From Laetmonice hystrix (lineage: Eukaryota), in the NCBI GenBank assembly GCA_965235115.1, contig OZ249441.1:16802001-16866000 (forward strand): a DNA stretch of 64,000 nucleotides. Direction: 5' to 3'. Made by a program: the position numbers and the translations under genes. Positions 51,001-54,000 of this stretch are shown piece by piece. Positions within the stretch are counted from its first letter, which is position 1; each line of letters begins with the position of its first letter. The notes beneath the pieces were generated by a model. The model saw only the letters and a list, made by a program, of their open reading frames with translations. It was not told the DNA's origin and made no database searches.

Positions 51001-54000
51001 GGTCAAATGGGGGGGCATCTTTAGCTAACTGAAACACTAGCTAATATATACCTCACTGGATGGGCATCTTGTCCAGTGGACTGCTACTCTGTGCCACAGT
51101 CAGAATGTCATACAACTACTAGCGTCAACTGTCTGTGATAAACTCAATCTGGGCAGATTTTTATCTGTAGAGGTTACACAGTTCATATCCGATCATAGAA
51201 CCTACCTAGGCTTCCGTTAAAGATCAAGTAGGTAGCTCTTTGCAAGAAAAAGTATCATTCCAGAAGTTGACCCTAGTTGTGTTCACATGCATATCACTGA
51301 CATCCACTGGTTCTACACACAAAATCACTGACACATACCATGCACAGTCTACATACACCACACTCACCTGTGTGTGCTCCTTGTACACATGGTGCTGAAT
51401 AACGTAAATCTACGAATCTATTGATAAATGTCTTGTTGGCACTTCTAAAAACATCTATGTTTACCGGTACTTCTGTGTTTAGAAACAAGAATTCAAAGGG
51501 GGAAACATGCTTTACAGTCTTCAACTCAGGTCTTATTGCGATTTTGAACAACTAACATGCAGTTACGAATGTGTATAAAAACTAAATATGATACAGTCGC
51601 CCAACACCAAAACAACCAAAGAATATATAGTAGAAAAAAATGTGTACCTACAAACGTTTGAGCAAAAAAAACCTCCCCTTGATCTTCATTAACATTTCAA
51701 TCTGAATAGACACTGATTTGATTTGTCTCCATTAAAATGTTTGCCTATCTGGTTGAAAAGGAATGACAGCCATGTTAAGGATGGTTGCTTTATCTATCGA
51801 ACATATATTACAGGGAATATTTCTATAATTCAGAATCAAGAATTGAAGGCCACAGTGCACCATATGCCAAATTCTGCCACACTTTCACAAGCATCCTGGT
51901 TCTGCATTCTTGCACCTTACTATTTTTCTTTTTTTTTCTCAAACTCAATAGGGCCAGGGCCAGTAAAATAAAATGCTAACAGGAAAGGCTGAAACGTTTT
52001 GCAATGGCATACATCTACTGAATCACTTAGAATCAATCGTTGTCTGGTTTCAGCGTTTCCTGTCAGAGAAAACTGTAGAAATAACCATATTGTCATGCCA
52101 AACCAAGCCTCAACTGAACTTCACAGACCTCACACAATGAGCGAACCAACTCTCTTTTAAGTTGCAACCTACAGTTATTATCCAGAAATCTTTTTGTGAA
52201 TACAAATTTCTGTCAAGAAGCAATCCTCTTTTTCTGGTCACACATGACTTTTATAAAAAAAGCAATAGTTGGATCTCTTTGTGTGCAAGTCTGGAAGGTA
52301 TGGAATGTCTAATCGCACCTCCTCAGTATCATATAGAGCTCTAGTTGTCAACCGGTTTCGACCAGTTTGTTGACTTGTTGTACTTCTTGAACTACGACCA
52401 CCCCTTCGTTGTCGTTGTCGACGGGTCCGTATGTGTTGTCCGGAGTCACTGGAATCATTCTGCTACAAAATACAAAGAACTTTCTTCTATATTCTATAGT
52501 CATGATTTATTCATCTTGTATCATCACAAAGACACATGCCAGGTACCGGTATTATATCACTTACTTATGTCCTCATAATGTTAAATATTTCAAAAATGCT
52601 TCTGAGAAGTTAGACTTTTAAGCAGTGCATGCAAGTATTCTCGCCTCCCACTGTCAGACTGCACAACTGCTGCTCACCTCTGATGGATGCGGTTTCTTCT
52701 TTCTCTCCAAAACAAACCTATGAATCTCTTCTTCAGCTAGGTGGTGGCGAGCTTCTTGTCCACTCCTAAATCATAATTTAGATATTAGTATCATTATATT
52801 ATATGAATATACACAAATATTGAATGCATAAAATTCATGGTCTGTATTATGTATTAACATATGGCTGCTGCAGTGTTTCTACTACACCGATGGAAGAAGG
52901 GGTTATGAGAAGCACTTCACTTAACAGACACTTGGAAAAGAGGTTAAAATCCAGGTGGGTCTTTGGTTTGGGTTAGCAATGCAACTATATCCTAGCATAA
53001 AGAAAGGCGACACTTTTTAAATTCTACACTGACAGTGAATTGGACCTCTTAGACTTACTTCACCAAGCCTGGGTCAAGTCCGCGTACAACTACTCTTCTT
53101 TGCCAGGCTGCAATGTCATTAGCTGTTGCTTGTTGAGACACGGGTACATTGCCACTAGCAACCCGTACTCCCTCCACCTCCCCACTGCGACGAGGGCCTC
53201 GTGCATGACTCGGTGGTGACATTGGACCATCAGGTGGGGGCAAGTGAGGCGCTTGTTCTTCCCTTTCTCCATGAGGGCGCAAATGGTCTTGTTCTCTTTG
53301 CATTAGCATAATCATGTCATCAATGCTTGGCCGATGGTCTGGCTGTACCTGCATAGGTTCAACATCATCGATCGGGATGTGCACGTCAAGGACCTCCCTG
53401 TCACCTGTCAGGCAAAAAATATTTAGTAAAAAAACAGTTGTTTTCTCCCCAATATACTAAAATCATTCTGACAAAGGTGCACATGCGACATTTTCGTTTT
53501 GAAGGAAAGGCAGTTTTCAGTGCTGAAAAATACATTCCAGTTTGAATTATTATTCTCCATTCGACACTCACCATTAGGTGCAAATCCAATTGTAGGCACA
53601 AGCTGCTCACTACTGGCATTTTCCCTGCCTGGTACGAGACGTTGCAGCCACGACGGATGCGGGTTTCCATCAATGTCCACCAAGAATGGTGGTGGCATCA
53701 GATGTGGAGGTTGTTGAGTTTGTTCGTCCAATACAAAGTTGTTTGCATCTCTTATCAGGGGCCGGTAGTCAGTGTGGAAAAACATTTCTTCCGGCAACTG
53801 TTGATAGGTATACAAAAAATAAGTCTATATTTTCAAATTATATGTTAACTAACGGAAAAAACTTACAAATTTTCAGTAACAAATTCAAAAACCTTTATCT
53901 TCAATAAGTGACAGGTGCATGGTAATTTTAATTCTGCATACCTTCTTGTATCTCTCAGTAGTACCAAAGCCATACAGCATGCTGAAACCATGAGAATCAG

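Follow-up and report, generated by a model that had tools for sequence, protein, structure and literature searches.

The window, a 64,000-nucleotide stretch of DNA from Laetmonice hystrix, carries a predicted gene of the PHIP/BRWD family on its minus strand. Pfam domains WD40 (PF00400), BRWD_AD (PF25313) and two copies of Bromodomain (PF00439) lie in that order, in successive minus-strand exons, and the domain-bearing exons span positions ~59300 to 44300. PHIP/BRWD3 proteins align colinearly with the exons in tblastn searches, at ~46–53% identity. The top full-length matches, with ~48–53% identity, are those of scallop, octopus, Lingula, oysters, mussel and Owenia, which makes the host a lophotrochozoan with no near kin in the annotated protein sets. 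Both the domain set and the best matches support assignment of the gene to the PHIP/BRWD family, as a preliminary description of this DNA had proposed.

Our interest is in one intron of this gene, between two exons that the preliminary description numbered 18 and 19. The numbering is approximately right; 14 homology blocks lie upstream, several of them with two exons, and the exact count was only roughly checked. The upstream constitutive exon, exon 18 (52319–52462, minus strand), was defined from the sequence and its translation. It is 144 nt long, runs from phase 0 to phase 0, and ends at a weak donor, GAG/gtgcga (here and below, a slash marks a splice junction). The downstream exon, exon 19 (50841–50935, minus strand), is 95 nt long, begins with an acidic run, in phase 0, and ends at the donor TAG/gtccgt. 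Its acceptor, at 50935, reads cttgcag/GAGGAAGAG. Read from the minus-strand letters, these flanking exons, and the phase-0 junctions on both sides, are as had been claimed. Because both junctions are phase 0, a stop-free insert divisible by three leaves the frame intact. The intron itself is 1383 nt. The C-terminal peptide of exon 18 (...RALYDTEE) is kept across lophotrochozoan homologues, and the junction sits in a fast-evolving, disordered acidic linker in which nearly any short insert would be tolerated. An insert here would come after the WD40 propeller and before the cryptoTudor/bromodomain module.

The candidate is a frame-preserving 27-nt segment seen in the DNA sequence at 51368–51394, on the minus strand. 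The segment, CACCATGTGTACAAGGAGCACACACAG, is stop-free and encodes HHVYKEHTQ. In context, the minus strand reads ...gatttacgttattcag/CACCATGTGTACAAGGAGCACACACAG/gtgagtgt, with the acceptor AG at 51396–51395 and the donor GT at 51367–51366. Hence, ttattcag, the 27 nt and GTGAGT are all found exactly where they had been reported. The candidate 3' splice region (51395–51415, minus strand) is agattcgtagatttacgttattcag, and its pyrimidine tract is moderate (~55% Y). A second AG, at 51411–51410, is also in frame. This AG, which the preliminary description placed 15 nt upstream, defines a longer exon of 42 nt (51409–51368) that is open across 14 residues. The candidate 5' splice site, GTGAGT, occupies 51362–51367 on the minus strand. 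It had been called perfect, and CAG/GTGAGT does score 9/9 against MAG/GTRAGT.

The minus strand of the window has five matches to MAG/GTRAGT, and the four besides the candidate are approximately at the ends of coding blocks of the PHIP/BRWD gene. In background strands, perfect matches occur at 9 per 360 kb, and ~0.25 would be expected in the ~10 kb of introns in this gene. The open frame counts for little, since ~65% of random nine-codon stretches are also free of stops.

Downstream of the donor is a UG-rich tract (51280–51361, minus strand) that contains two TGCATG words, at 51344–51339 and 51291–51286. These are +23 and +76 nt from the donor cut. A third TGCATG (51556–51561, minus strand) lies 162 nt ahead of the candidate acceptor. 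The three positions, their spacings and the UG-rich tract had all been described accurately. The 88 nt past the donor are of low complexity; they comprise 34% G, 34% T and 9% C, so that G+T makes up 68%, and TG and GT together account for 44% of dinucleotides.

We compared this arrangement with background sequence from the genome and with simulated sequence. In 488 kb of strand sequence, TGCATG occurs at 0.33 per kb. Among 177 GTRAGT sites in the same 488 kb, nine are followed within 100 nt by one TGCATG or more, and just one, the candidate, by two. An order-2 Markov simulation of the intron gave P ~0.0006 for the whole composite, a figure to be read with the post hoc selection of that composite, which was chosen after scanning the sequence. 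If the simulation is confined to the local TG-rich patch, the probability of at least two TGCATG words is ~0.03. Taking the intron as a whole, three TGCATG words correspond to P(≥3) ~0.004–0.009, and to about six times the background rate of 0.33 per kb; the same holds for a related species considered below. The composite is unusual for a single intron, yet hundreds to a few thousand are expected genome-wide, because there are one to a few such composites per Mb of strand.

Two readings of the segment follow. We judge the chances to be about even that it is an unused pseudo-exon in the PHIP/BRWD intron. If so, an in-frame AG and a perfect GTGAGT donor would have been paired by chance in a CA/TG-rich patch, and the same patch would also yield the UG repeats and the TGCATG words. 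We infer that the segment would then not be spliced into PHIP/BRWD mRNA, or at noise level only. The other reading, to which we give appreciable though minority weight, is that the segment could be a real, young, lineage-restricted alternative microexon of the RBFOX type. In the mechanism proposed for this, RBFOX, and perhaps CELF, would bind the two UGCAUG elements and the UG tract, and so aid U1 at GTGAGT; elsewhere, the segment would be skipped. The proposed product is a protein with nine residues, HHVYKEHTQ, added to the acidic linker where RBFOX is expressed. The rarity of the composite in the genome favours the young microexon, and the low-complexity context, which itself generates such words, speaks against it. 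A regulator may be present. A probe for the RBFOX RRM matched two adjacent, exon-sized stretches, C1 58066404–58066514 (65%) and 58064400–58064504 (86%), with its two halves, and other RRMs scored 32–38%; the probe was an approximate sequence, which makes the result indicative only. Such an RBFOX-like RRM gene would be consistent with a regulated microexon.

Other identities for the patch fared poorly. The candidate and its surroundings (501 nt) occur once in the 627-Mb genome, with no tandem repeat, and we rejected an origin from a repeat or transposon. Similarly, a structured RNA, snoRNA or miRNA was rejected; no Rfam family came near threshold and the predicted fold is less stable than shuffled sequences (z = +1.6). 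The suggestion that the patch is a piece of a transposon, a small RNA within the intron or part of an antisense feature was raised solely by the odd composition of the segment, and we found no supporting evidence for it. The copy number, the lack of tandem repeats, the Rfam result and the fold largely refute this suggestion, and we regard it as very improbable. A recursive splice site was also considered. Here, CACAG/GTGAGT is preceded by CA-rich, not pyrimidine-rich, sequence and the intron is short, at just 1383 nt, so this was set aside.

Public sequencing runs gave a view of variation at the locus. Three runs, all DNA-like and from one sample, were the only ones to match the locus (query 49900–53900), and they contain 77–89% of the words of this mostly intronic 4-kb stretch. 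Since coverage of mostly intronic sequence is so high, the three runs are DNA. Contigs from the runs align to the locus as continuous genomic sequence, without spliced joints across the introns; the sole joint reflects an allele of the next intron that lacks 44 nt. This deletion belongs to a second haplotype or individual, which also has eight SNPs and three indels in the intron of the candidate. Two of the SNPs, at 51404 and 51406, are 10 and 12 nt upstream of the acceptor, and both exchange one pyrimidine for another on the minus strand. No variants fall in the 47 critical bases, made up of the 27 nt, the splice dinucleotides and donor hexamer, and the two downstream TGCATG words. The second haplotype or individual hence spares the exon, its splice sites and both motifs, as a young microexon would predict, but only ~0.4 variants are expected in 47 bases, so the variant-free state tells nothing on constraint.

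Homologous proteins were then compared across the junction. Of the 22 distinct homologue contexts collected, none has an insert at the junction of exons 18 and 19, and the acidic run directly follows the conserved peptide in all. Likewise, no insert follows ...RALYDTEE in the RNA-supported isoform sets of Octopus, Mytilus, Saccostrea, Crassostrea, scallops, Sinanodonta and Asterias, or in the collected Logan transcript-derived ORFs. The preliminary description, which named no match for HHVYKEHTQ in vertebrate PHIP/BRWD, was right in that known PHIP/BRWD proteins offer no counterpart of the peptide. A PHIP/BRWD protein from the species itself was not found among the matches listed in a representative search, a full-length profile search and two exon-sized searches; for the profile search, whose profile was dominated by a starfish sequence, these were the best 120 of 2190 matches, so that closer transcripts may have escaped notice.

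The position of the intron is old. An intron after YDTEE(E) occurs in Capitella (252 nt), in Lingula (~155 nt, with a GC donor) and in Pecten (621 nt), and is common to these species and to the closer relative discussed below. In Owenia, exons 18 and 19 are fused into one and the intron is lost. The orthologous introns of Capitella, Lingula and Pecten have neither TGCATG nor a frame-preserving candidate. Since these three introns lack a candidate, and Owenia has no intron, an ancient microexon is excluded. For a young microexon, the absence of a counterpart from Capitella, Lingula, Pecten, Owenia and every collected isoform is a point against, as is the location of the insert, which would break the conserved YDTEE-EEEE acidic run. 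As a separate observation, an oyster transcript-derived ORF runs on from YDTEEEE into the orthologous intron, which hints at intron retention.

An exon-sized protein search identified one closer relative, represented by the Logan genomic contigs L002 and L003, which are identical over 3626 nt. The encoded protein is 67% identical to that of the window for exon 20 and 84% for exon 21. Contig L002 holds orthologous exons 17 to 21, with an intron 18 of 1420 nt. Compared with the window, identity is 88% at the end of exon 18 and 64–88% at neighbouring exon ends. Within the intron, the sole part that aligns significantly is a block of ~110 nt just upstream of exon 19 (50936–51044, minus strand), which aligns with L002 2618–2729. 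The local score is 33, compared with a null 95th percentile of 17. A search for more relatives, using a conserved intronic word in metagenome contigs, gave no match.

The intron in L002 has a candidate of its own. This reads tatatcag/TGTGGTCAGGCTATTTGC/gtgagtgta; the segment is 18 nt long, encodes CGQAIC, preserves the frame and follows a good pyrimidine tract. The donor, GTGAGTGT, is as in the window, a TGCATG lies at +18, and there are three TGCATG words in the 1.4-kb intron. For an intron of such size, we estimate the chance of this composite at ~0.002 (Markov) or ~0.007, with an upper bound of ~0.02 (real background). Note that the composite was defined after both loci had been seen, and that four species were examined. 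Hence, its recurrence in L002, with the same donor octamer, is moderate evidence for a young microexon and not decisive.

Alignment of the two candidates is less favourable. The best L002 match to the candidate region, GTGAGTGT...TGTGCATGGT at L002 2579–2604, runs from the donor to GCAUG, with a score that 35% of the control segments from introns, and 31% of the shuffled sequences, also attain. In a global alignment, the L002 candidate falls opposite another part of the intron in the window, ~280 nt closer to exon 19. The position relative to the conserved block before exon 19 thus differs between the window and L002, which is unfavourable to a shared young microexon. Candidate peptides and lengths (27 and 18 nt) are unrelated. 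A colinear motif match, GTTATTCA...TGTGCATG...TGCATG with L002 1987–2100, was rejected; the shared 8-mers number 5 loci against 3.5 expected, which is chance level. Recursive splicing was rejected in L002 too, where TTTGC/GTGAGT has no AG. On conservation of the exon and UGCAUG, proposed earlier as a check, the outcome is mixed. An analogous candidate with TGCATG at +18 exists in L002; conversely, the alignment is no better than controls, and the candidate is missing from the introns of Capitella, Lingula and Pecten and from Owenia, which has no intron to hold it.

The UGCAUG sites might themselves be functional, with the AG...GTGAGT pair incidental. In this event, they would tune removal of the intron, use of the weak exon 18 donor (GTGCGA) or splicing of exon 19. 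Three TGCATG words per ~1.4 kb in both introns, with P(≥3) ~0.004–0.009 for each, fit such a role, and the true flanking donors (gtgcga and gtccgt) are weak. Conservation of the 110-nt block ahead of exon 19 also suggests regulated splicing, and the oyster ORF hints at retention of the intron. On the other hand, the TGCATG words are 750–1030 nt from exon 18 and 350–620 nt from exon 19, beyond typical RBFOX distances, and none of the sites in the window aligns with one in L002. The orthologous introns of Pecten, Lingula and Capitella lack TGCATG. Furthermore, as exon 19 is 95 nt long, its skipping would shift the frame. We consider it unlikely that neighbouring exons are the target of the sites.

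Taken together, an unused pseudo-exon is supported by the lack of an insert in any isoform, by distant introns with no candidate, by the non-significant L002 alignment, by the low-complexity patch and by the unremarkable acceptor. Counting against this are the rarity of the composite, the analogous candidate in L002 and the RBFOX-like RRM in the genome. A more specific proposal is a young microexon of one annelid lineage, in which two species would keep the frame, the donor GTGAGTGT and an RBFOX site ~20 nt downstream, while peptide and length drift. This is possible, if rather doubtful. Were it true, the target of selection would be the splicing event, or acidic-linker spacing in a CRL4 substrate receptor, and not the inserted residues.

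What the locus means depends on which reading holds. If the microexon is real, it offers an example of microexon architecture kept between species without its peptide. It would also give a protein that is both a chromatin reader and a CRL4 substrate receptor one more isoform, specific to the lineage and probably regulated in nerve or muscle. Even so, the candidate is in that case an ordinary addition to the well-described RBFOX microexon class. RBFOX-flanked microexons are known by thousands and, because of this, and because the linker is poorly conserved, disordered and without known function, the interest is modest. If instead the segment is a pseudo-exon, which is somewhat likelier, the lesson is one of caution. 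A TG-rich patch within an intron can yield a perfect donor together with an open frame and a pair of RBFOX words; therefore, motif-based microexon calls need junction reads or clear conservation.

Alternative microexons enhanced by RBFOX are ≤51 nt, symmetric, found in disordered regions and enriched for TGCATG on their downstream side (PMC4317164, Li et al. 2015, Genome Res). Where such microexons are alternative and symmetric, the adjoining intron sequence is as a rule strongly conserved, beyond 75 nt (PMC4317164). By these standards, the anatomy of the candidate fits the published class (PMC4317164). At 27 nt it is within the ≤51 nt limit, as the preliminary description held, and it is divisible by three, lies in a disordered region, and has canonical splice sites and a UG-rich flank with TGCATG. 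It differs from RBFOX-type microexons (PMC4317164) in being known from DNA alone, and in that the peptide is not conserved. Furthermore, neither the exon body nor the flanks are demonstrably conserved with L002, which weighs against a young microexon given the high conservation typical of flanks in the class (PMC4317164).

With intronic pseudo-exons, the candidate shares a good donor and a usable AG inside an intron, and an exon body without cross-species conservation. Unlike the usual pseudo-exon, it unites a 9/9 donor, a stop-free frame and a pair of RBFOX motifs, and an analogous set is present in the L002 intron. Neural microexons dependent on SRRM3/4 (eMIC) are a further class, in which a UGC element is expected between the pyrimidine tract and the AG. 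The candidate resembles these eMIC/SRRM4 microexons in its size class, in keeping the frame and in having a strong 5' splice site. It departs from them in that the 20 nt before its AG (agatttacgttattcag) contain no UGC; the nearest TGC is ~48 nt upstream.

The closest parallel by gene family is a real alternative microexon in annotated mollusc PHIP/BRWD isoforms, which encodes VSHSTG in Octopus (18 nt) and TGRPGHR in Mytilus (21 nt). Like the candidate, it belongs to the same family in Lophotrochozoa and is an optional linker insert, in this case of 6–7 residues. Unlike the candidate, it follows ...SPWDxEPxDPxR, before bromodomain 1 and several exons downstream, and its sequence is unrelated. 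The counterpart of this mollusc junction in the window is the intron at 48964–48771 (195 nt), which has no obvious candidate. The Octopus and Mytilus isoforms nonetheless show that the PHIP/BRWD family carries real microexons.

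Compared with L002, a Logan genomic contig from a closer relative, significant conservation within PHIP/BRWD intron 18 is limited to about 110 nucleotides directly upstream of exon 19; the remainder is unalignable. In pairwise alignment, the conserved block covers window positions 50936-51044 (minus strand) and L002 positions 2618-2729, and gggtgcgtNtgcatctaaaggc is part of it. This segment, 5' of exon 19, may hold the branch point or polypyrimidine tract, or else may regulate splicing. Within intron 18, the reference assembly differs from three DNA runs of one sample (X1-X3) at about 0.8% of positions. 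All three runs also contain a 44-nucleotide deletion allele between exons 19 and 20 (window 50528-50571).

In two oyster ORFs from Logan contigs (P0329 and P0306), the peptide from the exon 18 end runs straight on into intron sequence (VIT, VKK). One of the two is an 844-residue ORF, on a 4.2 kb contig, and this hints at an oyster transcript retaining the counterpart of intron 18. In Lingula anatina, the orthologous intron (locus L025, about 7917-8072) appears to have a GC-AG donor, GAG/gcaagt. In Owenia fusiformis, a Prenyltransf (DHDDS-type) gene lies head-to-head with PHIP/BRWD, immediately upstream (locus L026, 1-443).

An RBFOX-like RRM, split between two exons, is encoded on the minus strand of the window's own genome assembly (G000:C1:58064400-58066514). 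Identities are 86% and 65%, relative to an RBFOX RRM probe. This is probably the RBFOX gene of the genome. A separate minus-strand stretch of the window, at about 15680-16401, holds two units with ORFs (IRLSTRDADGCGFVLLVRLGVWALDNL...) that are nearly identical and approximately 396 nucleotides apart. They indicate that a tandem duplication took place locally.

A 195-nucleotide phase-1 intron of PHIP/BRWD (window 48771-48964, minus strand) contains no obvious microexon candidate. Its counterpart junction in molluscan PHIP/BRWD has an annotated alternative microexon: VSHSTG (18 nucleotides) in Octopus and TGRPGHR (21 nucleotides) in Mytilus.
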